IMG/VR virus record: IMGVR_UViG_3300032236_002285
Coordinates: 1 to 64,000 of that record
DNA length: 64,000 nt
Strand: one strand, 5' to 3'
Shown: positions 3,466-63,809 of the stretch, one piece after another
How positions within the stretch are numbered: the first letter of the stretch is position 1
Layout: every line of letters starts with the position of its first letter
Notes under the pieces: generated by a model
What the model saw: only the letters and a program-made list of their open reading frames with translations
Database searches by the model: none
What the model was told of the DNA's origin: nothing
Made by a program: the position numbers and the translations under genes

Positions 3466-3852
3466 TTATTTTTGAGAGTCACCTTTCCAAACTCTATATG
3501 AATCTGAATCAGAATGTGTTGTTGAAACTTCAAAGATAACACCATCTGTTAAAGCTTCTAATTGGTGAGGTTGACCTGGTCTTTGTCTAACGGTATCACC
3601 TTCAACTAACCTTTGTTCTATAACATCAGCTGTTTCGGTATCTATCCAACGATATAGGAATTCACCTTTATCAACATACCAAGTTTCATCTTTAATCATA
3701 TGATAGTGCATCGAAAATTTTGCACCTTTATTAAAACAAAGTAACTTGCCACAATAAAGTTCATTATTTTCAATAATAACTTCCTTACCCCAACCCTTTG
3801 GTACACAACATCCTTCTGTATGAAGTGCGTTTATAACAATTGGTTTATCCAT
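3466..3852 (-). CDS. Cupin-fold sugar isomerase-like protein
   Basis: KGWGKE...SMHYHMIKDETWYV...PGQPHQL...FEVST cupin motifs. Confidence 0.75.
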   Translation of the reverse strand: MDKPIVINALHTEGCCVPKGWGKEVIIENNELYCGKLLCFNKGAKFSMHYHMIKDETWYVDKGEFLYRWIDTETADVIEQRLVEGDTVRQRPGQPHQLEALTDGVIFEVSTTHSDSDSYRVWKGDSQK

Positions 3853-6025
3853 TTATTACTTGATTTATTTTTTCAATTACCATAGATGATGTAATTTGTT
3901 TAGTACATTCAAATTGCCTCTCAGTGTCTTTATGATCCGGACACCAGTTCCAATCACCTCCATTTAATCTATGTCGATTAAAACATCCTGTACAAACATT
4001 TTTATTTATAACACGATAGGTATTTGATGTAGTTTCACTATACTCTTCACTGAAGCCAGATATAAGTACGGTAGGTAATCCAATTGTCCAAGACAACCAA
4101 CTTAAACCAGAACCTAAACCAACAAAGAATTGACAAGTAGCCATTTCTTCAATTAATCTATCAATTGAGCCAGCTTCAAATTTAGTTATGCCTTTTGGTT
4201 GAAAATTACCCATATAACCATCAGGTTCTTTTGAGTAAAGAACAACTTCATAACCAAGTGATATTAAATAATCAACTACTTCTTGCCAACCATTTGGATT
4301 GTTCCAATATTTAGCTTGACAAGTGGCATGAATTCCAATACCAACTTTCTTTTTCTTTTCAACATTTGGAACTTTTAATAAAGCTCTTGTTTCTTTATAA
4401 TCTAAGCCTAAAATATCAGAGGCTGTTTTTTGTAATGGTTCTTTTCTAAAGTCATTTGGATTTCTCGCTTCATCATATTTACCATCTTTATAGAACCAAC
4501 CTATTTTATACATAGCGTATAGATTATCAACAACGCTGCCTGGTTCAACAAATGTAATATCTGGATATGTTTCTCTAAACAAATAGTTCATAAAACAAGA
4601 TACTACTAATTGACATTCATTTTTATCTTTAAATTCTCTAATAAAAGGAATCCAAGCTAATGTATCACCTAATGAGCTACTTTCTAATGTGATAAATACT
4701 TTCTTATCTTTTAAGTCTAAAGTTTTATCATATAATAAAGTACCACCTTCCCAAATCTTAGTATTCCATTTTGTAAAATATTCTCGATTTAACTTAACCC
4801 AGTGATTTATTGGTAGTATTTCAGAGTAATGACATCTACCTGACTCATCATAGAATTCTATTTTGAATTTACTATCAGAACTTCCAGTTATTTCTAAAAA
4901 TGGATTAACTATAAAATGTTGAGTTACTATTGGTTTAGGTATAAATTTAGTTTGTTCCATTATAGGCATTCTGTGTACTTTTTTATAAAAGTTATAATAA
5001 GTATTTGCGAAAGATTCTGACTCATCAATAACTTCATACTTTTTATCACTTTGTAATAAAGCAATGATTTTATACTTTGTAGAAACAAGATCCTCATTTA
5101 TTTCAGTAATATATGGAGTAAACATACTCATATATTGAGGTAAGTTTCTTGAAATTATTTTAAGACCGTGTGAAGCCGATTCTTTAAGAACTAAAGGATT
5201 ACACTCCCATGTTGAATTAAACATAAAGACATCGGCCGCTTTCATAAAAGTATCTATATCAGATCTTTCACCCCAAACTTTTACATTTGAAGGAATATTT
5301 TGCATAATTGGACTCCAATACTCTGAAAAGTTCATTGCTTGATTTCCTATAAAGTGAAATTGTATATCAGGATTTGATTGTTCCATCAATCTAGCTATTT
5401 CAACACCTTCTCCTTGATTCTTACCAGATGTCCAAAGACCTACATTAATTACATGTTTTTTATTAGGATCCATACCTAATAGTATTTTGGATTCTAATTT
5501 TTCAGCATCTGTTGGTACTTTATTTTCTAAAGGAAATTGTATAACCTCGCTATAAGAAGGCATTTTAGCAAATGTTTTTTCTTTGTGCCATGGTGTACAA
5601 AAAGCGTAAGCATCTGGGTTAAATATTTTACCTGAATCAGGGTTAAACCAAACATTATGACAAGTTTCAACTATTTTCCAAGTTCTATTATTATCATATA
5701 GTTCGTTTAAAAAGTTGCTAGGAAATTGTTGACCAAAACCTTCTAATATCTCATCAACATGTACAACATCTATGTTGTTTTCTTTAATTATATCAAGTAC
5801 TCTATTTTTATCTTCATAAAGAGTAAAGAAGTTTTCAGGTTTTATTAGCTTTTTAATTTGCTCTTTTTGAACAACATACTCATTGCTAAAATTTGAATAT
5901 TCAATTACAAATAACTCCAAATCTTCATAAGATATTAAAGCTTCAATTCTTCTTAAAAGAAATGAAGGCATCCCACCAGTTGAAAGATGTGGTGCTAAAA
6001 ATAAAATCTTTATCTTTTCTTGCAT
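3845..6025 (-). CDS. Fused glycosyltransferase: N-terminal GT4-like domain plus C-terminal Aah/TibC-like protein heptosyltransferase
   Basis: N-half has PHLSTGGMP, KNQGE and ECNPLVLKE. C-half has SSSLGDTLAWIP, KYWNNPNGW, GLGSGLSWLSW and a Cys cluster VCTGCFN...WNWCPDH...QFECTKQIT. Confidence 0.8.
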   Translation of the reverse strand: MQEKIKILFLAPHLSTGGMPSFLLRRIEALISYEDLELFVIEYSNFSNEYVVQKEQIKKLIKPENFFTLYEDKNRVLDIIKENNIDVVHVDEILEGFGQQFPSNFLNELYDNNRTWKIVETCHNVWFNPDSGKIFNPDAYAFCTPWHKEKTFAKMPSYSEVIQFPLENKVPTDAEKLESKILLGMDPNKKHVINVGLWTSGKNQGEGVEIARLMEQSNPDIQFHFIGNQAMNFSEYWSPIMQNIPSNVKVWGERSDIDTFMKAADVFMFNSTWECNPLVLKESASHGLKIISRNLPQYMSMFTPYITEINEDLVSTKYKIIALLQSDKKYEVIDESESFANTYYNFYKKVHRMPIMEQTKFIPKPIVTQHFIVNPFLEITGSSDSKFKIEFYDESGRCHYSEILPINHWVKLNREYFTKWNTKIWEGGTLLYDKTLDLKDKKVFITLESSSLGDTLAWIPFIREFKDKNECQLVVSCFMNYLFRETYPDITFVEPGSVVDNLYAMYKIGWFYKDGKYDEARNPNDFRKEPLQKTASDILGLDYKETRALLKVPNVEKKKKVGIGIHATCQAKYWNNPNGWQEVVDYLISLGYEVVLYSKEPDGYMGNFQPKGITKFEAGSIDRLIEEMATCQFFVGLGSGLSWLSWTIGLPTVLISGFSEEYSETTSNTYRVINKNVCTGCFNRHRLNGGDWNWCPDHKDTERQFECTKQITSSMVIEKINQVING

Positions 6026-6112
6026 AGTTACACTTATATTTTTTCTTATAGTTTATATAAAATTTTGTAATAAAGTTATATTCTTTATTATTAAAAAGTA
6101 TGTATGAAAATT

Positions 6113-6120
6113 AATATATA
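6113..6120 (+). promoter_or_regulatory. Putative late promoter AATATATA
   Basis: Recurring octamer, 5 nt before ATG 6126. Confidence 0.6.
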
Positions 6121-6125
6121 CTCAT

Positions 6126-6890
6126 ATGAAACTTGTAAAATATTTTGAATTTAATCAACAAGATTTAGAACCTATTAAATCTTTTTATCTTAAAGAAGAA
6201 TTAAATCCTAGATTATGGGATGATTTTAAGTTAGATGATGAAGTAAGAGAAGAATTACTTACAATTGCTCAAGATTTTTATGAAAATGTTGAGGCTGGTG
6301 CTGATGTAGTTGATATAGTACTTGCTGGATCTTTATGTAACTATAACTGGTCTGAAAAGTATTCAGATTTTGATTTACATATTATTATTGATTTTGATGA
6401 TGTTGATGAAAACTTTGAATTAGTTGAGAAGTTTTGTGATTATGCTAAAAAGATTTGGAATGAACAACATGATATTAAAATCAAAGGCTATGAAGTTGAA
6501 ATAGCTATTCAAGATAATGATGATTTAGATAAAGCTATTGAAGGTGGTAGAATGGGTGGTGTTTTTTCTTTATTGAAAAATAAATGGATTAAAAGACCAG
6601 AAAGAATAGATTTTGAGCCTGATGAAAAGCTAATAGAAGAAAAATCTAAAACTATTATGATGTCTGTTGATGATATCGAAGAACAATCAGAAGAAGATAA
6701 ATATGAAGCTTTTGATGAAAAGATTTCAAAGGTTTGGAAGAAGATTAAAGATTTTAGACAAAGTGGTTTAGATTCTGAATCTGGCGAGTTTTCAGTTGGT
6801 AACTTAGTATTTAAGTTACTAAGAAGAAATGGGTACATTGGTAAAATAATGGAACTAAAGAGAAAAGTTTACGATAAACAATTTAAGTAA
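6126..6890 (+). CDS. Pol-beta superfamily nucleotidyltransferase with N-terminal CTS-like tag
   Basis: DIVLAGSLCNYNWSEKYSDFDLHIIID (GS...DxD motif), third acidic residue in YEVE. Confidence 0.75.
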   Translation: MKLVKYFEFNQQDLEPIKSFYLKEELNPRLWDDFKLDDEVREELLTIAQDFYENVEAGADVVDIVLAGSLCNYNWSEKYSDFDLHIIIDFDDVDENFELVEKFCDYAKKIWNEQHDIKIKGYEVEIAIQDNDDLDKAIEGGRMGGVFSLLKNKWIKRPERIDFEPDEKLIEEKSKTIMMSVDDIEEQSEEDKYEAFDEKISKVWKKIKDFRQSGLDSESGEFSVGNLVFKLLRRNGYIGKIMELKRKVYDKQFK

Positions 6891-6891
6891 T

Positions 6892-7587
6892 ATGGAAATT
6901 AAAATATCAGAAATAGAACAAGTATTCAAAGATGTCTTTGTTGCTGAAGAAGGTGTAGTAAATACAGTTGAATCTGTATATGAGATGTCAAGAGATGAAG
7001 ATTTCTACAAACTTGTTATCTCTATACATGGTTTATCAACTCAAGATACTTCAATTATACATACTAAGTTTATATTCAAAACAGACTTAAATAAAAGACA
7101 TCTTATTGAAGATTCTTTTATCTATCTATATGATATCAATTGTGTTTATCATAAGATAGAGTTTACAAATGTTGTAGACATGAAAAAGAAAATAGAAGAT
7201 ATTGTTGAATCAAAAAACTTTGGAGAGGATTTGCAAATTCTTTCTGACTTTATTGAAGCTCCAGCTATGTTCTTAAACTATTACATGAGAAGAGATAAGA
7301 TTACGGATTATTCAATATTTGATGTTGAGTATGAACCTAAGTTTAAAACAACTCCTTGTGATAAAACAACATTTGATTTTAAGATTAACATTAATAATAA
7401 TTATAAAATGGAACTATCTATACATAAAATAGATAGAGTTGATGAGGAAGAACTAGATACTTATAAGTTTCAATTTAAGTTTATGGATGAGATTGAAACA
7501 TTTGAAACAGATACTCTTAAAAACCTACACTTCTTTATTGGAGACCATATTGCTAAAATTTTAGATAGAAAATTAAAGAATAAGTAA
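6892..7587 (+). CDS. Hypothetical protein
   Basis: 231-aa ORF in operon, typical codon usage. Confidence 0.7.
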   Translation: MEIKISEIEQVFKDVFVAEEGVVNTVESVYEMSRDEDFYKLVISIHGLSTQDTSIIHTKFIFKTDLNKRHLIEDSFIYLYDINCVYHKIEFTNVVDMKKKIEDIVESKNFGEDLQILSDFIEAPAMFLNYYMRRDKITDYSIFDVEYEPKFKTTPCDKTTFDFKININNNYKMELSIHKIDRVDEEELDTYKFQFKFMDEIETFETDTLKNLHFFIGDHIAKILDRKLKNK

Positions 7588-8243
7588 TGAGATATCTTGA
7601 AAAATTTGTCAATTATTTAAATGAATCAACAGAGGATATAACCGATTTAACTAAAGAAGAGTTAGATGAGTTACTTATTCCTATTACAGATTTAGGTGTT
7701 CAATATACATTTTCACCACCAAGAGTTATCACGGATGGTGAATTTTCTGGATTCAAATCAATGAATATAGTTTTTAGAAACTCTTTTCAATTAGGACCAT
7801 CTGGTGGATATACTGAGCAAATTATTGATGATAAATTCTGGGACTTCTTAGATGAGTTAATAGCTCTTAAAAATCGTTTAGAAAGTTCTAGAGTTTCTAT
7901 TAATACTAACTGGAGACACCACATAGTTGTTACTTTTGTACAAAAAGCCAAAGTTGAAGGTGATTTATTTACAATACAAAAGTTGTATAATGATATGTGT
8001 TTAAGAACTAATGCCGCAAAGAGTGATTTTGTAAATAACATGACTAAGAGTTTAGATAAAGAAAATTTAAAAATTACAGTTAATTGTAATGGTTATAGAG
8101 AGGGTGCTTATACTGATAGAAAGTGGAATGGTCTTTTCAGAGGTATAGATTTTTCTAAATTTAATGTTGAAAAGGATATTACTGAAGATAGATATGGTAT
8201 TAAAAATGCTGTTATTACAATTACTCTTAAAAGTGAATCATAA
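7587..8243 (+). CDS. Hypothetical protein with CTS-like N-terminus (MRYLEKFVNYLNES)
   Basis: ORF coupled to the upstream gene through a TAATG overlap. Confidence 0.7.
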   Translation: MRYLEKFVNYLNESTEDITDLTKEELDELLIPITDLGVQYTFSPPRVITDGEFSGFKSMNIVFRNSFQLGPSGGYTEQIIDDKFWDFLDELIALKNRLESSRVSINTNWRHHIVVTFVQKAKVEGDLFTIQKLYNDMCLRTNAAKSDFVNNMTKSLDKENLKITVNCNGYREGAYTDRKWNGLFRGIDFSKFNVEKDITEDRYGIKNAVITITLKSES

Positions 8244-8280: not shown

Positions 8281-9720
8281 ATGTCTCATATATTATTAAA
8301 ACAAGTACCAACTTCAGCGATTACTGCACCTGCATCAACAGATGTTAAATTTTTTAGTAATTTTAACGATGGTGGTCTTTTGTATTATATGGATAGTTCA
8401 GGCAATCCGATGCCTGTTGGTAGTGGAGGGGGTGGTTCTACATATGTTCCAGTTGTATCAACAACATATGCTAGTTTATACTCTTTGTGTACTTCAAGTG
8501 GATTTGCTACAGGTTCTTATTATTTAATTAATGACTTTGAATCAATTTATGAACAGCCAGATTTTTATTGTGATGGTACTCCTAAGTCTTCCTTAGATTT
8601 AAAAGGTAAGCCTTCTGGTTGGGGATACCAACCTATTTTAGTAATGGCCACTTCTAAAAATTCTTTATCAATTGATGCTTATCAACCGCCTATCACTGGT
8701 GGTAGTTATTATGGTTTTAATAATGATAAAATTAAATATGATTTTTCTTTTAATAAAACAGAGTTTAATAATAACACTAAAGGTAGAATAACAGAAAGAA
8801 TAGATCAGTTTGGTAACAGAACTGATTATGACCATAGAGCTATTAGATTTAAAAGATATCAAAATTATACTAAAAATACTATTAAATCGGGCATTATAGA
8901 CTCATATAATTGCACCACTGGTGATTTGACTGGTGTTGGTACTTTTTTCCTATCCGAACTATCAGCTAATGATATTATTATTATAGATTCAATGTCTGAT
9001 TTAGGTTATAATATTGGATTAAAAGTTAGATCCGTAACAAATGATGTCATGGCTACTGTTTTCATCGATAGCTTATACTCTGGTAGTGTTCCAAGTGTTG
9101 TTGCTTTAAATAGTGGTACGACAATTACTCCTGTTGATTACAGCTTTGGTGGTAAAAATTATGATTATTATTCAACAACGGCTACCGGTGTTTATAATCA
9201 ATATAAGGAAGTTTATTTTGGACAAGGTGATAATAATGATTGTAATAAGGAAGTTTATACGTTTCAATTATCATATCCTAATTTAACATCAGGTGCTACT
9301 AATAATAAAATTGGCAATTACTCTCAGATTTACTTATCTGGTTCTACTAATAATGTTTTTATATTACCTAATAATGTTTTTGGTTCATCTTGTAATAACA
9401 ATGTTATTTTAGATAATTGTTATAACAATCATATTGGTGATGGTTTCTTTGATAATAATTTAGGTTATAATTTTAGTAAAAATTTAATAGGTGATAATTT
9501 CTCAAAGAATACTACTATTGATACATTTTCTTCTAATATTATATCTGATAATTTTAGATGGAATATAATACAAACAGGTATTTCAACCTATGATTTTACA
9601 TCATCAACACATGTTTATAGTAACTATACCTGCTATATGTTTTCAAATTCTTCGGGGTTTTCTAGATTGTCATATTATGACCCATCTGATGTATTGACGA
9701 TTGTTAATGTTGATGCTTAA
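8281..9720 (+). CDS. Virion/tail-associated protein with Asn-rich beta-helix-like C-terminal repeats
   Basis: About 11-residue repeats (NNHIGDGFFDNNLGYNFSKNLIGDNF); AATATATA upstream near 8249. Confidence 0.55.
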   Translation: MSHILLKQVPTSAITAPASTDVKFFSNFNDGGLLYYMDSSGNPMPVGSGGGGSTYVPVVSTTYASLYSLCTSSGFATGSYYLINDFESIYEQPDFYCDGTPKSSLDLKGKPSGWGYQPILVMATSKNSLSIDAYQPPITGGSYYGFNNDKIKYDFSFNKTEFNNNTKGRITERIDQFGNRTDYDHRAIRFKRYQNYTKNTIKSGIIDSYNCTTGDLTGVGTFFLSELSANDIIIIDSMSDLGYNIGLKVRSVTNDVMATVFIDSLYSGSVPSVVALNSGTTITPVDYSFGGKNYDYYSTTATGVYNQYKEVYFGQGDNNDCNKEVYTFQLSYPNLTSGATNNKIGNYSQIYLSGSTNNVFILPNNVFGSSCNNNVILDNCYNNHIGDGFFDNNLGYNFSKNLIGDNFSKNTTIDTFSSNIISDNFRWNIIQTGISTYDFTSSTHVYSNYTCYMFSNSSGFSRLSYYDPSDVLTIVNVDA

Positions 9721-9986
9721 TTCATAAAAGAAATAACCTTATCTAAGTTTTCTCTGTTGAATCCGTCTAATGGTTTTCCGCCACTTTTTAAGTAGTCTCC
9801 GTATAAGTTATTATACTCATCTATTGTGTAGAATCTATTATCTATCTCTGATAATATTACATTTGTATCATGAAAGGTAACAGTTTTGTTTTGTAATCCC
9901 GTCTCTCCATATGCTGGTCCAATTGGTCCTACCAATTCAGTACCAGATACTTCTTCATTAAACTGTTTAAATGATTTAATCTTCAT
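9717..9986 (-). CDS. Small protein with CTS-like N-terminus (MKIKSFKQFNEE)
   Basis: 89-aa ORF carrying the shared N-terminal motif. Confidence 0.7.
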   Translation of the reverse strand: MKIKSFKQFNEEVSGTELVGPIGPAYGETGLQNKTVTFHDTNVILSEIDNRFYTIDEYNNLYGDYLKSGGKPLDGFNRENLDKVISFMN

Positions 9987-21124: not shown

Positions 21125-22258
21125 ATGAGACATATTAAAAAGTTCAATGAAACAAAAAAGTCAGAAAAAGTAAAAGACCAAGAGGTTCTTTTTAATGCTG
21201 AGGTTTTAGCTGATAAAGATGAGAAACCATCTTTTAAAACAGAAGTTGAAGACCAAGAAGAGGTTAAAAAAGAATTTGATAAGTTAAGAGGTAAAGTTGA
21301 GAAATTTGAAAACTTTATCATCGCTATCGAGATTGAACCTACTGATGAACTTGAAAAAGAAATAGAATCTGAATATGAAGAAGATAATGGTTGTGGTTGT
21401 TGTGATAACTGCACTGGTCAGCCTGGTTGTGATTGCGGTTGTGGTAACTGCACTTGTAGTGATGTTCAACATCCTGAAGAAGTTCAAGTTTTACCTGCTT
21501 CCCAGTTTGTTAACAATATGTTCGTTTTGCAGTTTTCTGAGAGTTTAAAGTTTCATTTAGATAATAATAAACCAATTACTGAAAATATATTCAGACCTGG
21601 TTCAGATGCTTTTTATGAAGTAATCAAAGAAGCAAGACAAATGTTTGATTTAGCTAAAGTTACTTTATGTGATGTTGATAAAGATATCTTTGAATCTACT
21701 GAGATTGGTAACTTTGCTATGTTCAAAGGTGAATTAGTTCCTTTAGATTTACCAATGGAAAGTATAGTTGAGACAAATCAACCAGCATTTTCTATACACG
21801 ATGTAACTCCTGATTTCAATTATGAGGTTATGGGTAAAACCGTTACAAATATTAAACCATTGGCTTGGACTAAAAATAAAGAGGCTTCTTGTATAACATT
21901 TGAAGGTGAGGTTGATGGTCAAACTTGTAAATGTAAATATGATGATGGTCAAGATGGATATGTATTTGAGGCTAAATATCAAGGAAAAGAAGTTAAATTA
22001 AACTACCCTATGAGAGGTGGTGCTAAGAAGTACCATGTTTTTGTGAAGACACCTAAAGGTAATGTTAAAAAGATTTCATTTGGTGATGTTCATGGTGGGT
22101 TAACGGCTAAGGTTAGTGATCCTAAAGCAAGAAAGTCATTTGCTGCCAGACATCAATGTGATATGAAGAAAGATAAAACTAAAGCTGGATATTGGGCTTG
22201 TAGAATTAATAAATATGGTCACCTATGGGGTGGCAAAACTTATCCTGGTTACTGGTAA
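21125..22258 (+). CDS. Multi-module protein: CTS-like N-terminus, Cys-rich segment, basic C-terminal domain (KSFAARHQC...AGYWAC)
   Basis: MRHIKKFNE; GCGCCDNCTGQPGCDCGCGNCTC; C-terminal domain resembles DUF6321-type phage proteins; AATATATA at 21089. Confidence 0.65.
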   Translation: MRHIKKFNETKKSEKVKDQEVLFNAEVLADKDEKPSFKTEVEDQEEVKKEFDKLRGKVEKFENFIIAIEIEPTDELEKEIESEYEEDNGCGCCDNCTGQPGCDCGCGNCTCSDVQHPEEVQVLPASQFVNNMFVLQFSESLKFHLDNNKPITENIFRPGSDAFYEVIKEARQMFDLAKVTLCDVDKDIFESTEIGNFAMFKGELVPLDLPMESIVETNQPAFSIHDVTPDFNYEVMGKTVTNIKPLAWTKNKEASCITFEGEVDGQTCKCKYDDGQDGYVFEAKYQGKEVKLNYPMRGGAKKYHVFVKTPKGNVKKISFGDVHGGLTAKVSDPKARKSFAARHQCDMKKDKTKAGYWACRINKYGHLWGGKTYPGYW

Positions 22259-31354: not shown

Positions 31355-31915
31355 CTATTTTGATGTCTGACTTGACATCTTCTTGATATTATCCATCATA
31401 TTTTTTTCTACATCTTTCATTTTATCATCTAATGACTTTTGTGCTTCTGCTATATCTTTAACTAAAGAAGCTATAGTTGTCGTATTTGTCGATATTCTGT
31501 TGGTTATATCAGTGATTTTACCATTTACAGATTGTTTTGTACTGTCGTCGGTTATACTTTGTAGTTGACTACTAAAATCATCTTTTTTAACTTTATCATC
31601 AGCAATACTATTTTGAAGATTATCAACTTTTCTTTTAAGATTAGCAACATGTAAGTATTCAACTAAAAAAGGATTTTTAGGTGTTTTTTCATCGGCCTTG
31701 CCTATAATCTCATCAACCTTTATTTGTAAGTCAGCATCTGATTTTATTTTAAGATAAGCATTGTCTAACAAAGGTTTCTTTGTTTTGTATTCAGCCAATT
31801 GCTTTTGAGTTATTGATAACTCATCTTTAGCCATTTTAACATCAGGTTCGTCTGTTAGATTAATATCAAAGTCTGCTTCTTCTATAAAGAGTTTATATGT
31901 TTTAAGAGTTCTCAT
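31355..31915 (-). CDS. Coiled-coil protein with CTS-like N-terminus (MRTLKTYKLFIEE)
   Basis: 186-aa helical ORF. Confidence 0.7.
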   Translation of the reverse strand: MRTLKTYKLFIEEADFDINLTDEPDVKMAKDELSITQKQLAEYKTKKPLLDNAYLKIKSDADLQIKVDEIIGKADEKTPKNPFLVEYLHVANLKRKVDNLQNSIADDKVKKDDFSSQLQSITDDSTKQSVNGKITDITNRISTNTTTIASLVKDIAEAQKSLDDKMKDVEKNMMDNIKKMSSQTSK

Positions 31916-43657: not shown

Positions 43658-44272
43658 ATGGCTTATATTAAAAAATTTGAGAGTTTTCAAAGTCAATCTA
43701 TATTGGTTATAGTTGATGTTCAGAAAAGCTTTCGTAAGTTTTTTTCAGAAATGTATCTGAATGAATTAAAGAAGTATTGTAAACAATTTGATATTGTTTA
43801 TCAAATTTTTGATAATCACATAGATGGTAAGAATGTGGATAAAGATTATTTATATGATGATGAGCCGATTATTCCTATTCATAAAGATCTTTATCATTTC
43901 CCTAATCAAAAAGAACTTATTGAAAAAAGATACAATTATAAAGTAGATGCTGACTTTTATAAGAAAATTCTAGATAAAGAAGTATATAATGATATTTCTG
44001 ATAAAGAAGATAAGAAATTATTAAAGAAAGGTGATATATTTCCTACTAAAGAATATACATACATAGTTTATATTGGTAATAACCATCAGTGGTATCACTG
44101 CCCTAAGAAGTTATATGAGTTATTAACATCATTAAAAGATAAAGAAGTTACAATAGTTGGTGGTGCTGATGGTGAATGTCTTGAAGACATTGTAACCACC
44201 GCTGAAAGTTTAGGCGTTAAAATTAAAAGAAATTACAAGTATATCTATACTGCTAGTAGTTGTCCGATTTAA
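43658..44272 (+). CDS. Cysteine hydrolase (isochorismatase/nicotinamidase-like) with CTS-like N-terminus
   Basis: ILVIVDVQKSF; VTIVGGADGECL; N-terminus MAYIKKFES. Confidence 0.6.
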   Translation: MAYIKKFESFQSQSILVIVDVQKSFRKFFSEMYLNELKKYCKQFDIVYQIFDNHIDGKNVDKDYLYDDEPIIPIHKDLYHFPNQKELIEKRYNYKVDADFYKKILDKEVYNDISDKEDKKLLKKGDIFPTKEYTYIVYIGNNHQWYHCPKKLYELLTSLKDKEVTIVGGADGECLEDIVTTAESLGVKIKRNYKYIYTASSCPI

Positions 44273-44760
44273 CCCTCGTCAGGCATATCAAAACAAATTC
44301 TTAAAACATCACCGTCAAATCCAACCGAACATTGTTCAAAGTTAGAAAAAGCTTGAAACCTCGGAACAATTTCTTCTTGAAGTAGTTTAAATATTTTTTT
44401 AATTTTATTATTATTTGCCATAATAATGTTCTTTAATTTTTCTAGATTTTCGATCTGATTGTCAACTGAATAGCCAAGTGGTGTATAAAGTAACTCTATA
44501 TTACCTGGTTCATCTGTTGGTGGTATTACTTCAAGTAAATATTTAGCTGTTAAGTAAGTTCCTTCTTCATCAACTTCCTCATCATTTATTTGAGGTATCG
44601 TTAATTCACAATCGTAAAAATAGTCGTTCTCTTTTGTATAGTCGTGAAATTCGCAGTGGAAATAATCAGATAATTCCATCATAATCTCTTTGAATGTTTC
44701 AAAATCACATTCTTCTCCTGAAGCTTCGTTGAACTTTTTTAAGTAAGTCATCTTTTTCAT
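44269..44760 (-). CDS. Acidic protein with CTS-like N-terminus (MTYLKKFNEA)
   Basis: 163-aa ORF. Confidence 0.65.
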   Translation of the reverse strand: MKKMTYLKKFNEASGEECDFETFKEIMMELSDYFHCEFHDYTKENDYFYDCELTIPQINDEEVDEEGTYLTAKYLLEVIPPTDEPGNIELLYTPLGYSVDNQIENLEKLKNIIMANNNKIKKIFKLLQEEIVPRFQAFSNFEQCSVGFDGDVLRICFDMPDEG

Positions 44761-50239: not shown

Positions 50240-50605
50240 ATGTATTTAAATAATAAAGACCTTTATATTGAGGTAATCGTATCAAAAGCACAAGGCAAAC
50301 TAACAAGAAATGCTGAAAAAATGTTAGAACTACTTGCCAAAAAAACAATCAAAAAAATGAGATATTGGTCTAATGATGATAAATTAGACTGCTACCAATC
50401 AGGACTATTAGATATGTTCCAAAACTGGTATAACTTTAATGAAGATAAATCCGTAAATGCTTTCGCATACTTTACAGAGGTATTCAAAAGAGGAATCGCC
50501 AAAGGTTATAACGAACTTTATAAGAAGAAAGGTGATAACGAACACTTAATCAAATTAATTTCAATTGAAGGTTCAAACGATGGACAAGGACTTCACTCAC
50601 TCTAA
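50240..50605 (+). CDS. gp55: Late-transcription sigma factor (gp55-like, minimal)
   Basis: YLNNKDL start; NFNEDKSVNAFAYFTEV sigma region 2 motif. Confidence 0.75.
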   Translation: MYLNNKDLYIEVIVSKAQGKLTRNAEKMLELLAKKTIKKMRYWSNDDKLDCYQSGLLDMFQNWYNFNEDKSVNAFAYFTEVFKRGIAKGYNELYKKKGDNEHLIKLISIEGSNDGQGLHSL

Positions 50606-54434: not shown

Positions 54435-56162
54435 ATGGCATCTTATAATCAATTTCAAGCCGGCTCAGGTCAATCAAATTTCACTTATACAAATAGTGCT
54501 GTTGAAAATAAAGGACTTTTTAGTAGAATTTTAAGAAGTTTGTCATCATACGGTATGAACTATGATGATATGATTGTTAGAAACCAAGTTGGTATTGGTA
54601 TCAACGAAGATCCATTTGCTGCTAGAGGAAACTCAATGTATGATTTCTTTTCACAAAGAGCAGTGGCTTCTGTTTTAAACAGAAAATCAATTCCTTATTT
54701 AGATAAAGCATACGCTGATAAAAGAAGAATTCTAAGAGAATATTCAATTAAAGATGAAATCAGAGATTTCGTTAGTTCTATTACAGATGAAAGTATTGTT
54801 TATAATGATGAAAGAGATTTTTGCTCACCTGCTGCTTTAGGTAATGACTATTCTCAAGAAATTAAAGATAAATACCAAGAATATTTTGAAAAAATTTATA
54901 ATAAATATGGCTTTGGTGATAACATCACAGCTTGGAATATGATGAGAGATTTCTTAATTGATGGTTATCTAGCATTGGAAGTTATTTATGATGATAAGAA
55001 AAAGAATATTATTGGTTTTAATAGATTAAGACCTGAAACATTAGTTCCCGCATTTGAACCAACAATTGGTCACTTGTGGATCCAGTTTCCAGAAGATCCT
55101 CAATTAAGAAGAATCTTCTTAGACTCTCAAATTGTTTATATCTCATATTCAACTCAAAATGATTATTCAGAAACATCTTATGTAGAGGGTTTAATTAAAC
55201 CTTATAACCAATTAAAGATTCTTGAACAAACAAGAGTAATGTTTAACATTATTAATGCTACGGTTTATCAAAAGTTTACTATTCCTATTAAGGGTTTATC
55301 AAGACAAAGAGCCGAAGAACAAATCGGTCAATTGATTAATGACTATTCGGAAGAAGTTGAATGGGATGATTCATTAGGTACATTAACTATTAATGGTGCT
55401 AAACACTTACCTTATAATAAACAAATTTGGTTCCCTGAAGGAGATGCTGGTACTCCAGCTATGGAATTGGTTTCACCTGAAGGACATAATTTGAATGAGT
55501 CAGATATGTTGACTTGGTTCTACAATGCTCTAAAAAGAGCTTCTAAAATTCCTTTCCAACGTTTTGATAAAGAAAATGGTGGTGGTAACTTAATCAATGA
55601 CTCATCAGATATGACAAGAGATGAGATTAAATTTTATAACTTTATTAATAGATTAAGAGCTAACTTCAAAGAGATTATCGTTAAGCCGTTAAAACTTCAA
55701 ATGTTAATTGAGTTTCCTGAATTAAAAGAAGATGAGGTTCTTATGAACCAAATTGATATTATCTTTAACTCAAATCAAGTATTTGAAGAATGGAAAAAAT
55801 TAAATAATTTGGCTAAGAAAGCTGAAATATTTGGTACTTTAGTTGGTATTATGAATGGTGAAAAACCTTACTTCCATATTGAGTATTTAATTGATAACGT
55901 ATTCAAATTAACTCCAGAAGAAAAAGCAGAAAACCAAAAATATTGGGCTAAAGATGCCGCTGGTGCTCCTGGTGGAGGCGGTGGTGCTGGTGCTCCAGGT
56001 GGTGAAGGCGGTGGTGAAGGCGTTGTTCCTGGTGAAGGCGGTGAAGCCGGTGGTGGTGAGGCTCCTGAAGCTGGTGGTGCTCAAGCTGCTCCTGAAGCTC
56101 AGGCGGCTCCTGAAAATCCTCCTCCAGCCGAAGGTGGTGGTGAAACCGAATTTGAATTCTAA
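54435..56162 (+). CDS. gp20: Portal protein
   Basis: FLIDG, KPYNQLKILE, AEEQIGQLINDY, ASKIPFQRF, MTRDEIKFYNFINRLR; Gly/Glu/Ala-rich tail. Confidence 0.92.
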   Translation: MASYNQFQAGSGQSNFTYTNSAVENKGLFSRILRSLSSYGMNYDDMIVRNQVGIGINEDPFAARGNSMYDFFSQRAVASVLNRKSIPYLDKAYADKRRILREYSIKDEIRDFVSSITDESIVYNDERDFCSPAALGNDYSQEIKDKYQEYFEKIYNKYGFGDNITAWNMMRDFLIDGYLALEVIYDDKKKNIIGFNRLRPETLVPAFEPTIGHLWIQFPEDPQLRRIFLDSQIVYISYSTQNDYSETSYVEGLIKPYNQLKILEQTRVMFNIINATVYQKFTIPIKGLSRQRAEEQIGQLINDYSEEVEWDDSLGTLTINGAKHLPYNKQIWFPEGDAGTPAMELVSPEGHNLNESDMLTWFYNALKRASKIPFQRFDKENGGGNLINDSSDMTRDEIKFYNFINRLRANFKEIIVKPLKLQMLIEFPELKEDEVLMNQIDIIFNSNQVFEEWKKLNNLAKKAEIFGTLVGIMNGEKPYFHIEYLIDNVFKLTPEEKAENQKYWAKDAAGAPGGGGGAGAPGGEGGGEGVVPGEGGEAGGGEAPEAGGAQAAPEAQAAPENPPPAEGGGETEFEF

Positions 56163-59875: not shown

Positions 59876-62038
59876 ATGAAACCAGTATTAATTATAGAAA
59901 ATTCAACAAACTCTCTTATTAGAGAGAATAATGGTTCACAAAAGAAGGATTATATTTTAGGTGGTACATTCACAGAATTTGGTGTTAAAAACCGTAATGA
60001 AAGAATTTACACTGCTGAGAAATTTCTTCCAGCGTTACAAGAACTAAATGAAAGAATGAGCAGCTTAGGTGTTGTTTATGGTGAGTTTGATCATCCAGAT
60101 GTTTTCGATACATCTCTTTCTAGAGCATCACACATCATTACAAAAGCTAATTATGTTAAAGAGTCAAATCTTGTTAGTGGTGAAATCAGATTATTAAATA
60201 CTTATTGGGGTAGAGAAGCTAAGGCATTGGTCGATGACGGATGTCCTGTTTTTGTTTCTTCAAGAGCAGCTGGTATCACTGAATCAGATGGTACTGTTTC
60301 GTTAAAAAAATTATTCACTTATGATATCGTTGCTGATCCGGGTTTTGCTTCAGCTAAAATGTCTATCAAGACGCTTAATGAATCATTAGGATATAATGAA
60401 AACTCTAACTTTAGGATATATGAAATGTCCGATGAGTCCAAAATAAATCAACTATTTGATATGAACAAAAATGAATTTGTTACAAAGCAACAGTTAACTG
60501 AATATTCTCAGTATTTAGTTAAGGAATTAGCTTCTACTAAAAAAGAAGTTAAAGGTGCTCTTACTAAAGGTAACTTATCTCCAAAGAAAATGGAGCAACT
60601 TTTAGAGTACTATGAAGAGTTAAATTCAACAAATGCTCAAGTTGTTAAATATCTAGATTATTTGGCTGAAAAAGTACAAGTTATGGTTAATGAGAACAAG
60701 TCGTTAAAAGAAACAACTGACAAACTTATTAAGCACAATGACTATTTAGCTGAAAATTTAGAGAAAGCTGTTAACTACTCTGAATATTTAGCTGAAAACT
60801 TAGACAAAAATATTGAGTATTCTGAATACTTAGCTGAGAACTTAGATAAGAACATTTCTTACTCTGAATACATTGCTGAAAACTTAGATAAGAACATTTC
60901 TTACTCTGAATATTTAGCTGAAAACTTAGACAAAAATATCGAATACTCTGAATACTTAGCAGAAAATCTTGATAAGAATATTGCTTATTCAGAATATATC
61001 GCTGAAAACTTAGACAAAAATATTGCATACGCTGAATACATTGCTGAGCACGTTGATAATTCAATTGCTTACTCTGAATACTTAGCAGAACATGTTGAAG
61101 GTAACATTGCTTACTCTGAATACATTGCTGAACATTTAGATGATAACATTGCTTATTCAGAATATATTGCTGAAAATCTTGACAAATCAATTTCATATCA
61201 AGGTTTAATCGTTGAAAAGTTAAATTCTAAAAAATTAAACGAATCAATGAATGAAGAAGATGAGGAAGCTTTCCCATCATTACATGATGCTGGTTTTGAA
61301 GATGCTCACGAAGAAGAAGGTCATGAAGATGCTCACGAAGATGACGAAGAAGATTGTGGTCCAATGGGTCATGAAGAAGAAGGTCATGAAGAAGAAGCTC
61401 ACGAAGACGTTCACGAAAATAAAGAAGAAGATGACGAAGAAGATTGCGGTCCAATGAGTCATGAAGAAGAAGGACATGAAGATGAAGAAGAAGAAAACTG
61501 GGAAGTTAAAGGTAACAGCGATTCTGAATTATCTGAGTCAATAAATAAATTAATTGAAGAAGCTAAAAAACGTAAAGTTTCTGAAAATAGTGATTTGAAT
61601 TTCTTAAAATTCTTAAACAAATCACAAGTAGATAGTTTCTATGCTTTGTCTGATGAAGACCAAGAGGCTGTTAAATTTCACATAAGCGAAAGAAATTACT
61701 TCACATCTAAAGATGTGTTAAGCCTAATCGCAGAAGCACTATCATCTAAGAATGAATCTCTTGAAGAAAGAGTTATCAGATTAATGCCTGAAAACACTAA
61801 GGCTATCTGGAGTCAAATGAATGAATCTGCTAAAAAATCTATCTTATCACAAGCTAGACTTTACCCAGCTGAAGTTTTAATGACTGAATCACAAATTGAA
61901 CATTTCTGGTTAACTAGAAATTTCAAGAAAAACGAATCTGTAACTAAAAAGTTAGTAGCTCATGAAAGTTTAATACAAGAAGATAAACTTTCTGATAATG
62001 ACGTTACTGCGATTATGGAAAGATTCAAAAACATCTAA
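59876..62038 (+). CDS. gp21: Prohead protease fused to scaffold/core protein (gp21+gp22-like)
   Basis: KNRNERIY, GEFDHP, ASHII, VSSRAAG, YDIVADPGF, followed by coiled-coil repeats and an acidic tract; directly upstream of the MCP. Confidence 0.9.
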   Translation: MKPVLIIENSTNSLIRENNGSQKKDYILGGTFTEFGVKNRNERIYTAEKFLPALQELNERMSSLGVVYGEFDHPDVFDTSLSRASHIITKANYVKESNLVSGEIRLLNTYWGREAKALVDDGCPVFVSSRAAGITESDGTVSLKKLFTYDIVADPGFASAKMSIKTLNESLGYNENSNFRIYEMSDESKINQLFDMNKNEFVTKQQLTEYSQYLVKELASTKKEVKGALTKGNLSPKKMEQLLEYYEELNSTNAQVVKYLDYLAEKVQVMVNENKSLKETTDKLIKHNDYLAENLEKAVNYSEYLAENLDKNIEYSEYLAENLDKNISYSEYIAENLDKNISYSEYLAENLDKNIEYSEYLAENLDKNIAYSEYIAENLDKNIAYAEYIAEHVDNSIAYSEYLAEHVEGNIAYSEYIAEHLDDNIAYSEYIAENLDKSISYQGLIVEKLNSKKLNESMNEEDEEAFPSLHDAGFEDAHEEEGHEDAHEDDEEDCGPMGHEEEGHEEEAHEDVHENKEEDDEEDCGPMSHEEEGHEDEEEENWEVKGNSDSELSESINKLIEEAKKRKVSENSDLNFLKFLNKSQVDSFYALSDEDQEAVKFHISERNYFTSKDVLSLIAEALSSKNESLEERVIRLMPENTKAIWSQMNESAKKSILSQARLYPAEVLMTESQIEHFWLTRNFKKNESVTKKLVAHESLIQEDKLSDNDVTAIMERFKNI
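60733..61200 (+). repeat. Coding tandem repeat, 42 nt / 14 aa (YSEY[LI]AENLDKNI[AES]), 10 full copies plus degenerate flanks
   Basis: Read directly in the translation of 59876..62038. Confidence 0.95.
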
Positions 62039-62114: not shown

Positions 62115-63809
62115 ATGTCACACATTAGAATAGACAAAACAAAAGCAGTTAAGAAATGGGCTCCTGTATTGGAGAACATGGGCGTTGCTGCTGATAGAGT
62201 TGAATGGATGTCAGAAATGGCTGAGTATCACTCAATCAATGAAAACGCATATGTAAATGCTTCTAACGTAGCAGGTATGGGTAGTGTATTGAATCCAGTT
62301 GTTGGTTCATTAGCTGGTAACCCAGGTAACTACACAAATGCTTACGGTAACGTAGCAGGTTCTGGCGACGTAGGTCAAAACTTACTTCCAGTAGCTATGA
62401 AAATCGCGGGTCAAACTATCGGTTTAGACTTAGTAGCTGTTAAACCAACTCCTGGTCCAAAAATCGATTTGTTATATATCGACTTCCAATATGACGATAT
62501 TAACACATCATCAAATGAAAGACCACAAGTTTTCAAATTGACTTGTGATAACGTAGCAGCTATCGAAGCAGCTATTACTTCTGATCTTTCTGGTTATTCA
62601 ATTAATCAAAGTCAAGGTGGTTTACAAGGTGGTAGAGTATTCTACGGTATTACTGCATCTAGCGTTTATAAAACAACAACTGAACCAGGTACTAAAACAA
62701 ACATCGTTGAGTTCTTAGGTTTCTCTCGTGTTGATGGTTTACCAATGTTCAGAGCTTACAGACAAAATAACTCTACAGCAGTAGGTGCTTATAATAACAC
62801 TTTTGACGCAACTAAAAACACTTTTGACCAAACTAGTCCAATAGTTTCTCAAATTTTAAGTATCTCTGGTGTAACTCCAACAGCTAACTCTAATAAAGCA
62901 GTTCAATTAGTATCTGCTCTTGAAGATCATCTTCCTGGTTTCTCTGCAAACTGGACATCTTCTACAGGTGCTGCTTCTGGTAACTACCCAATGGGTCGTC
63001 AAGCAGATGATGACAGCTATGCTGGTGTTATCGGTCCAAAAATTTCTTCTAAAACTGTTGCAGTTGGTACTATTGAAGTATCTTCAGCTCTTAGAAGAAC
63101 TGAAATTGAAGATATCAAAGCTAATACAGGTATGGATATCGTTCAAAAAATGGAATCAATCCTTGTTAACGAACTTTCTCAAACAATCTCTAAACAAATT
63201 GTTGCTAAAGTATTCGAAATGGGTGATTTGAACAGAACAGGCGCTCCTGCTTCTTCTGCAACTGCTAACCCTAACTCACTTTCAGGTTGGACAATTTTTG
63301 ACTTGGATACTGCATACGCATCTAACCAAGTTGGTGGTGAAACAACTCACGCTGTTCAACGTAAGTTGATCACTAAGATTGCTCACGCTTCTAACTATAT
63401 CGCAACTGAAGGTCGTGTTGGTCCTGCTCAATACCTTATCACAAACGGAGGTCTTGCTGCCGCTTTACAAGATATCGCTGGTTATACAATTAACCCAGTT
63501 AAATCTAAATTAAACGGTCAAGGTCAACTTTATCCAGTTGGTTCAATCGGAGATATCTCTATCTATGTAGATCCATATCAAAGATACAACGATAATAGAA
63601 TCGTTCTTGGTAGAAAAAACAACCCAGATCAACCAGGTATCATTTTCGTACCTTACTTGATGGCTCAGTCTATCTCAGTTATCTCTGAAGCTACATTCGC
63701 TCCACGTATGTTACTTCGTTCAAGATACGCTGTAACTGAAGTTGGTTGGTACCCACACAAGCAATACATGACTATTAAAGTTAATGATGCTGCTCAATTA
63801 CTTAACTAA
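62115..63809 (+). CDS. gp23: Major capsid protein
   Basis: KKWAPVLE, QTIGLDLVAVKP, IYVDPY, GIIFVPY, TFAPRMLLRSRYA; probable processing site SINE near residue 43. Confidence 0.93.
   Translation: MSHIRIDKTKAVKKWAPVLENMGVAADRVEWMSEMAEYHSINENAYVNASNVAGMGSVLNPVVGSLAGNPGNYTNAYGNVAGSGDVGQNLLPVAMKIAGQTIGLDLVAVKPTPGPKIDLLYIDFQYDDINTSSNERPQVFKLTCDNVAAIEAAITSDLSGYSINQSQGGLQGGRVFYGITASSVYKTTTEPGTKTNIVEFLGFSRVDGLPMFRAYRQNNSTAVGAYNNTFDATKNTFDQTSPIVSQILSISGVTPTANSNKAVQLVSALEDHLPGFSANWTSSTGAASGNYPMGRQADDDSYAGVIGPKISSKTVAVGTIEVSSALRRTEIEDIKANTGMDIVQKMESILVNELSQTISKQIVAKVFEMGDLNRTGAPASSATANPNSLSGWTIFDLDTAYASNQVGGETTHAVQRKLITKIAHASNYIATEGRVGPAQYLITNGGLAAALQDIAGYTINPVKSKLNGQGQLYPVGSIGDISIYVDPYQRYNDNRIVLGRKNNPDQPGIIFVPYLMAQSISVISEATFAPRMLLRSRYAVTEVGWYPHKQYMTIKVNDAAQLLN

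Follow-up and report, generated by a model that had tools for sequence, protein, structure and literature searches.

The window analysed here is a 64-kb stretch of DNA (64,000 nucleotides, nt) from the IMG/VR record IMGVR_UViG_3300032236_002285, the first part of a T4-related megaphage genome of 476,236 bp (29.9% G+C, ~600 genes, standard code, CheckV completeness 97%). At 6126..6890, on the plus strand (+), lies a coding sequence for a 254-amino-acid (aa) nucleotidyltransferase (NTase) of the Pol-beta fold, which was assigned to the phage family PHROG 36119 on the basis of the open reading frame (ORF), profile matches and an AlphaFold2 (AF2) model. The ATG at 6126 was the first start codon past an in-frame stop, the ORF was judged to be real, and the genome held one copy of the gene. 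An earlier note, made from the sequence alone, had described the product as a late-expressed, tag-bearing NTase that could be delivered with the genome. This interpretation was partly supported: an active-type NTase and an indirect virion association held, and the late promoter and the CTS-like start held in part. Judging from alignments and the model, the NTase is probably an active member of a new, widespread and phage-specific family, and the evidence leaned, by a little, towards a virion-carried, late-made enzyme that acts as an injected host effector.

The GS...DxD motif of Pol-beta enzymes, which the note had called intact, was indeed so. The catalytic motif G68-S69 ... S80-D81-F-D83 (6327..6374, +) was followed through two alignments: A1, with 50 relatives at 36–64% identity, and A2, with 77 further multidomain (fusion) relatives. 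G68, S69, S80, D81, D83 and H85 were invariant in both, and the conservation of G68-S69...D81-x-D83 was far beyond chance. L26, W31, E125, R211, N226, K230 and R233 were also invariant in A1. The residues of A2 that were apparently equivalent to R211, N226, K230 and R233 were likewise invariant, and E125 (6498..6500, +), the third catalytic carboxylate, was at least 90% conserved there. The AF2 model (pLDDT 94.5, pTM 0.87) comprised a Pol-beta NTase domain and a C-terminal four-helix bundle (residues 162–254; 6609..6887, +), in which R211, N226, K230 and R233 were located. G-S was placed after strand 61–67, D-x-D on strand 81–88 and E125 on strand 122–130, which are the canonical positions, and the alpha-beta-alpha-beta-alpha-beta core resembled those of solved NTases. 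The superfamily patterns h-G-[GS] and [DE]-h-[DE]-h plus a third carboxylate were all present. In the confidently predicted fold the active site is intact and strongly conserved, and alignments and model together indicated that the NTase is probably catalytically competent.

The Foldseek comparison that the note had proposed pointed to the same fold. The top PDB matches were all Pol-beta-fold NTases (CdnE, ANT(6), AAD(9), ANT(4'), Tam41, MNT and the CCA-adding enzyme), with E-values of 2.3e-3 or worse and TM-scores of 0.2–0.3, and no solved structure was close to the NTase. Because these matches were weak, and neither a close solved structure nor a named subfamily was found, the proteins were regarded as a divergent Pol-beta family. 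The family profile also matched the AMPylation domain of DrrA (E 0.0038). By analogy with the two-domain ANT/KNTase-type enzymes, the C-terminal bundle probably binds the nucleoside triphosphate (NTP) or the substrate. A VIA-align comparison with all PDB representatives was dominated by generic helical bundles on residues 162–254, and was discarded as uninformative on the C-terminal domain.

The NTase family is large and essentially viral, and it has neither a Pfam model nor a functional PHROG name. The target matched phrog_36119 ('unknown function') with an E-value of 1.6e-35. A word search recovered 2,992 family proteins, and an exhaustive HMMER search recovered 3,716 representatives of clusters formed at 50% identity, with E-values of 1e-30 or lower for 1,021; the neighbours in the ESM-Atlas and BFVD were viral throughout. 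In Pfam, a poly(A)-polymerase (MTPAP-like) palm domain stayed below threshold (E 0.064), and PF01909 (NTP_transf_2, gathering threshold 21 bits) gave no match to the target at E-values up to 1. That threshold was passed by the relatives P0149 (25.5 bits) and P0182 (22.4 bits), and 11 further fusion proteins matched PF01909 at E-values up to 1e-4. Scans of the target with NCBIfam and PADLOC returned nothing significant, and a PDB sequence search with the single protein returned matches at chance level only. The NTase is acidic (pI 4.6), as is the family (median pI 5.15). Its nearest public genomes, as judged by the NTase protein, were the 'huge phages' LR756502, LR745206 and LR756504 (634–642 kb; 48–71% identity), and more distant carriers comprised Lak megaphages, the Maribacter phages Molly and Colly, cluster-C T4-like cyanophages and Caulobacter phage Cr30. 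Close orthologues (72–79% identity) were often ~363 aa long (LR756502 7992–9083, P0122, P0124, P0101 and P0109); their extra C-terminal stretch of ~110 aa had no Pfam match and was missing from the window copy and from most of the 254-aa relatives.

The NTase was compared with several known systems. KNTase/ANT(4'), ANT(6), AAD(9)/ANT(9), AadA and LinB have, like the NTase, ~250 aa and a Pol-beta domain followed by a helical C-terminal domain; they also carry the same G-S...D-x-D...E set and gave the best full-length Foldseek matches. GlnE/DrrA and MNT (MntA/HEPN-MNT) share the signature G-S-x(10)-S-D-x-D-h and a setting of biological conflict. Matches to the minimal NTases 2rff, 1ylq, HI0073 and MNT were obtained as well. 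However, the NTase is about twice the size of MNT and has no HEPN toxin partner, and the likeness is confined to the catalytic core. MNT proteins of ~100–130 aa stand beside a HEPN RNase, whereas the 254-aa NTase is flanked by o231 and a glycosyltransferase gene, and a PADLOC HEPN_IX match over residues 162–208 (E 0.057) was not significant. The NTase differs from DrrA in having no GEF or P4M domains. The full CD-NTase fold together with a CBASS-type operon or effector partner was not found, and with regard to RlaP and CCA-adding enzymes there was no Pfam match, the genes for a CCA-adding enzyme and RNA ligase 1 being far off in the genome.

The late promoter that had been assigned to the gene held in a modified form. 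The T4 late consensus TATAAATA was weakly enriched genome-wide, and it was rejected as the NTase promoter because no copy was found upstream of the gene. The genome has a promoter-like motif of its own, TTAATATATA, which occupies 6111..6120 (+) and is followed by CTCAT and the ATG, placing it 5 nt ahead of the start codon in what we call the proximal class; it was recognised by its enrichment and by its conservation in orthologues. The core of this motif is one base off the T4 late consensus (TATATATA vs. TATAAATA). AATATATA was found upstream of 135 genes, compared with 8.3 expected, and [AT]ATATATA, with 285 occurrences in the genome, lay in the proper orientation no more than 80 nt upstream of 172 of the ~600 genes, compared with 14 hits expected. 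The spacing was two-peaked: one class stood 28–33 nt ahead of the ATG and was followed by an A-rich leader, and the other, to which the NTase gene belonged, stood 12–13 nt ahead. In T4 late promoters, ~5 bases separate the motif from the transcription start. By analogy, the proximal class suggests that transcription starts at or beside the ATG and yields leaderless mRNA for ~60–75 genes.

All six identifiable T4-type late genes (gp4, terminase, sheath, portal, protease and major capsid protein, MCP) were preceded by the motif, compared with three of ten replication genes (Fisher's exact test, ~0.01 by hand calculation). It was also kept before the NTase orthologues of LR756502 and LR745206 (proximal class) and LR756504 (distal class), and in a 100-kb sample of LR756502 it stood before 51 of 137 genes. 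The phage appears to have T4-type late transcription, to judge from a 121-aa gp55-like late sigma factor (50240..50605, +; phrog_234, E 4.3e-6) with a weak match to gp55 of S-B68. Late expression of the NTase gene is plausible, given the association of the motif with structural genes. Further examples of the motif in the window were upstream of 8281, 10519, 21031 (−), 31293 (−), 38196, 54435, 59876 and 62115. The sigma factor gene itself had no TATATATA copy upstream. A scan for sigma-70 promoters gave fewer sites than the shuffled expectation, and an early-promoter candidate, TTTGATA[TA]AA, seen before gp32, gp41 and gp46, was dropped because it had too few sites (6 genes vs. 2.4 expected).

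Residues 1–9 of the NTase, MKLVKYFEF (6126..6152, +), form the first half of a tag that resembles the T4 capsid-targeting sequence (CTS), and this start was kept in more than 100 orthologues. It fits the pattern ^M[KR]..[KR][YF]..F, to which seven genes of the genome conformed, compared with 0.1 expected from shuffled N-termini. In the model, residues 11–20 were a confident helix, and in fused relatives the equivalent stretch, which lies internally, was related in sequence. In T4, a protease of the gp21 kind removes the CTS, cutting after an I/L-x-E-type site. Proteins of the present genome often began with peptides such as MIKKYNQFIKES, MRLKRYNDFIKES and MKLKRYNQFLES. The pattern [KR].[YF]..F[ILVFM], starting within the first nine residues, was found in 24 genes (1.0 expected from the internal rate), and with an iterated position-specific scoring matrix (PSSM), 72 proteins scored above every internal control window and fell into 69 unrelated groups once the first 22 residues were removed. 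The consensus M-(I/K)-K-K-Y-x-(Q/E/D)-F-(I/L)-x-E-S is thus carried by at least 72 otherwise unrelated proteins, ~12% of the proteome. It aligned residue for residue with the T4 CTS MKTYQEFIAE (PMC8442874), I/L-x-E end included.

The promoter motif was present on 50% of the tag-bearing genes and on 23% of the others. The tag appeared as an add-on, since profile matches began at residue 38 in the CCA-adding enzyme (378728–379897), at residue 54 in a Glu/Gln-tRNA synthetase (262861–264486) and at residue 78 in RNA ligase 1 (326882–328225), all outside the window; NUDIX, DeoC, 2H/Acb1 and ankyrin proteins were also tagged. Within the window, examples of tag-bearing genes were 31355–31915 (−), 43658–44272 (+), 44269–44760 (−), 21125–22258 (+) and 9717–9986 (−). 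The tag was enriched in LR756502 (9 vs. 0.8 expected), and no enrichment was found in samples of S-B68 (146 kb), Lak-C1 (50 kb) or Molly (16 kb). Genes were called with code 11 throughout, the Lak-C1 sample alone having TAG read through; code 15 has been reported for Lak phages (PMC7824862). Because the full tag occurs on housekeeping-type enzymes (tRNA synthetase, CCA-adding enzyme, RNA ligase), capsid targeting is only a candidate role. It seems rather doubtful that the freshwater-megaphage clade uses the tag as a portable address label of which the NTase bears a degenerate form.

The relatives of the NTase gave a further line of evidence. Some two-thirds of the 150 top family representatives were fusion proteins: 97 were at least 330 aa long, and 95 of these were scanned with Pfam. 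The NTase domain was mostly C-terminal in the long relatives, which reached 1,592 aa. The partners in the 95 scanned proteins were ART-PolyVal (7), GNAT (2), M23 peptidase (2), InPase, phage lysozyme, Amidase_2, 2H/LigT/Acb1 phosphoesterase, LysM, GDSL lipase and methyltransferase. Polyvalent proteins are multidomain proteins for which packaging and injection together with the phage DNA have been proposed. Their domain list includes ART, GNAT, InPase, 2H and lysozyme, the last three being listed for the phage type only (Iyer et al. 2017; PMC5512222). The polyvalent Pol-beta NTase described in that study is a minimal, four-strand three-helix domain, fused to ArdC-N in conjugative elements of firmicutes, and is said to be absent from phage-type polyvalent proteins (PMC5512222). 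Like the present family, it is a module within large multidomain proteins thought to be transferred with invading DNA; the present family, however, is larger, has its own helical domain, is viral and is paired with ART-PolyVal. Since no phage-type NTase was reported there, the family can be read as an addition to the polyvalent repertoire. It recurs in multidomain proteins near virion genes and also exists in solo versions, as polyvalent modules do, and the NTase of the window is one of the solo versions.

In P0144, P0151 and P0182, the ART domain ended ~20 residues ahead of the NTase domain. On jumbo-phage contigs, the ART-NTase genes P0151 and P0144 preceded Peptidase_S77 (the gp21 family) by ~5–6 kb, and Gp23 came shortly after it, a position that recalls T4 Alt. 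The likeness to T4 Alt thus lies in relatives fused to an ADP-ribosyltransferase beside gp21/gp23. With T4 Alt and IPI-III the present phage shares a T4-type head module, a gp21-like protease, a late-type promoter and an N-terminal K-Y-x-E-F; unlike the basic internal proteins of T4, the NTase is acidic and lacks the I/L-x-E end of the tag, and its packaging is putative. Other jumbo T4-like phages (the 363-kb contig L021, and L022) carried an ART-PolyVal-NTase giant in a conserved block that also encoded a ClpB-like AAA+ chaperone and, as a separate gene, InPase. The prohead protease and MCP genes of L021 lay downstream of this block, and an IS605 OrfB/Cas12f-like TnpB gene was present there too.

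An experimental link to virus particles came from cyanophage S-CREM2, whose gp156 (ORF156, 126012–126725) is 30% identical to the NTase over 235 aa (E 3e-28). ORF156 was detected in the mass-spectrometry proteome of CsCl-purified virions with six unique peptides and 15.2% coverage, and its neighbours ORF154 (an NMNAT-like cytidylyltransferase) and ORF155 were in the same virion list (PMC10665884, Table 3). With relatives in virus particles and others fused to injected-effector domains, the NTase is a good candidate for a phage-delivered enzyme. The evidence for virion association of the family, drawn from these homologues, is indirect but convergent, and suggests that members are carried in the particle. 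The cyanophage homologues start with MKKLISE... (S-CREM2 gp156) and MKRLLSE... (S-B68), a short N-terminus that ends in I/L-x-E, the type of site cut by T4 gp21.

The NTase gene appeared to be the first of a three-gene operon. After a gap of one base it was followed by o231 (6892..7587, +), and the start of the third gene, o218 (7587..8243, +), overlapped the end of o231; no terminator-like site was found between 6126 and 8243. o231 also followed the NTase in LR756502 and LR745206 (75–78% identity) and had 1,663 homologues, the metagenomic ones among the matches listed being at least 85% identical, higher than those of the NTase. No family was found for o231 in Pfam, PHROG or the Atlas, and modelling it with AF2 gave a poor result (pLDDT 65, pTM 0.49), since the relatives at hand were all at least 84% identical. 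Family searches with o218 also found none; its N-terminus, MRYLEKF..., was a borderline tag match (PSSM 8.2). On the other side, a 726-aa double glycosyltransferase (3845–6025, −), with a GT1-family domain at residues 186–307 and a GT9/heptosyltransferase-like domain at residues 539–659, was divergent from the NTase gene and adjoined tail-fibre-like genes. The window began with a collagen-like tail-fibre protein (1–2679, +), which had many PHROG tail-fibre matches and ran off the start of the record. The G+C content of the first 2 kb was 44%, compared with ~29% elsewhere, because of the Gly-X-Y repeats of this gene.

A T4-type head module was located towards the end of the window. It comprised a T4-type portal (54435–56162), a gp21-like head maturation protease with a long C-terminal extension (59876..62038, +; phrog_207, E 1.2e-31, and a tblastn match to the S-B68 prohead core protein) and a T4-type MCP (62115..63809, +) with the promoter motif at about −31. 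The protease domain covered the first ~310 of 720 residues, and the C-terminal part may be a fused scaffold or core protein. Elsewhere in the genome, three more genes resembled Pol-beta NTases by regular-expression match only, at 133057–133650 (+), 434654–435496 (−) and 446188–447150 (−); one had the RlaP-like G-S-x-x-Y-G...S-D-x-D, and one was a second CCA/poly(A)-polymerase-like protein. The 476-kb record carries the label 'provirus' in IMG/VR despite its 97% completeness, and no host-like flank was noticed in the 64-kb window. A megablast search of 8 kb against phage records found no near relative. In a sequencing-run search, the locus was detected in DNA metagenomes, mostly labelled freshwater, in small shares.

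Here, we propose that the NTase is made late, carried in the virion and injected. The enzyme would bind an NTP with two metal ions and attach a nucleoside monophosphate, AMP being the likeliest, to a hydroxyl group on some macromolecule or metabolite of the host, releasing pyrophosphate; the InPase fusion found among the relatives would fit such a pyrophosphate-releasing reaction. It would be synthesised late from a gp55-type promoter, probably on a leaderless mRNA shared with the two downstream genes. It would then travel inside the virion and be set free in the next host, to serve there at an early stage as an effector of take-over or counter-defence. Elsewhere among phages, the module is built into proteins of the injected polyvalent kind, right behind an ADP-ribosyltransferase domain. 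Delivery with the genome, as the note had proposed, was thus favoured by the virion-associated homologue of S-CREM2, by the polyvalent fusions and by the two fusion genes near prohead-protease and MCP genes.

Several observations weigh against this proposal. The protein detected in virions was the S-CREM2 homologue, and the authors of that study cautioned that abundant non-structural proteins of infection may co-purify with virions (PMC10665884). In Maribacter phage Molly, as in a marine contig, the solo homologue lay amid non-structural genes, among them NUDIX, thymidine kinase and metallophosphatase. The sequencing-run search returned no RNA runs with the locus. The promoter motif preceded ~27% of all genes, including PhoH, UvsX and NrdA, and may therefore not be strictly late. 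The CTS-like start was confirmed for the first nine residues only: the [ILV]-x-[ED] (I/L-x-E) end of the tag was missing, and the NTase ranked 202nd of 600 by PSSM, which is at background.

We agreed with the note that the substrate is not readable from the sequence. The roles of Pol-beta NTases in host–parasite conflicts include protein AMPylation, the synthesis of cyclic nucleotides, tRNA repair and the inactivation of antibiotics. By rough judgement, protein nucleotidylylation of the DrrA/GlnE/MNT kind ranks above a small molecule or nucleotide, and the latter above an RNA 3' end. The DrrA/MNT-like SD-x-D-h signature and the ART and GNAT partners made us lean towards protein modification. 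Among the activities named in the note, the AMPylation of host proteins was accordingly favoured by judgement, and the repair of tRNA ends became the least likely.

A small-molecule or nucleotide NTase would be the next reading, although we consider it unlikely. Such an enzyme could be ANT/KNTase/Lnu-like, or could make or inactivate a signalling nucleotide against CBASS, Thoeris or Pycsar-type defence. The resemblance to two-domain ANT enzymes and the Acb1 and InPase fusions would suit such a substrate, and the NTase-plus-helical plan is shared by the best full-length Foldseek matches (ANT(6), AAD(9), ANT(4'), LinB, AadA, CdnE, CdnB and CdnD). Homologues were also neighboured by an NMNAT-like cytidylyltransferase in the cyanophage and a NUDIX protein in Molly, and a cyanophage homologue (DSL-LC02) was annotated as 'aminoglycoside nucleotidyltransferase'. 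That annotation was automatic, however, and the Foldseek matches were as weak as given above; PADLOC and NCBIfam did not add a significant match, and no conserved partner pointed to a particular nucleotide pathway.

Less likely again is a cytoplasmic RNA-end enzyme (CCA-adding, poly(A)/TENT or RlaP-like), which would repair or tail the 3' ends of tRNA or other RNA in the infected cell, counter host anticodon nucleases and stay unpackaged. The MTPAP-like palm match, below threshold in the target, had an E-value of 5e-4 in P0125, one fusion joined the NTase to a 2H/LigT phosphoesterase, and RNA repair NTases are common among jumbo phages (PMC7824862). However, the genome already encodes a canonical CCA-adding enzyme (PF01743, E 3e-30), a T4-type RNA ligase 1, a 2H phosphoesterase and a protein with the RlaP-like motif, and these separate genes, with the acidity of the family, argue against RNA-end repair. 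No RNA-binding domain was recognisable in the NTase, no Pfam match to RlaP or PolyA_pol was obtained, and the recognised fusion partners mostly modify proteins or the cell wall. A catalytically dead NTase fold that acts as a structural or scaffolding component of the virion is very improbable: the detection in S-CREM2 virions and the apparent operon with the highly conserved o231, near tail-fibre-like genes, would suit it, but the catalytic residues were invariant across 127 diverse sequences, distant fusions included (E125 in at least 90% of the 77 fusions), and some relatives exceeded the Pfam threshold of an active family.

The NTase family is a candidate for a new class of injected effectors, on account of the virion detection in a cultured cyanophage, the ART-PolyVal fusion in jumbo T4-like phages and the late-type expression in the megaphage. 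Culturable carriers exist in S-CREM2, S-CRM01 (homologue g125), Cr30 and Maribacter phage Molly. The promoter motif with its apparently leaderless class and the CTS-like tag may matter equally, as handles on regulation and protein sorting in uncultured megaphages. If the tag were a capsid-targeting signal, the phage heads would be loaded with an enzymatic toolkit that is injected with the DNA, and the NTase family, both in its solo form and as ART-PolyVal fusions, would represent one widespread part of what is injected.

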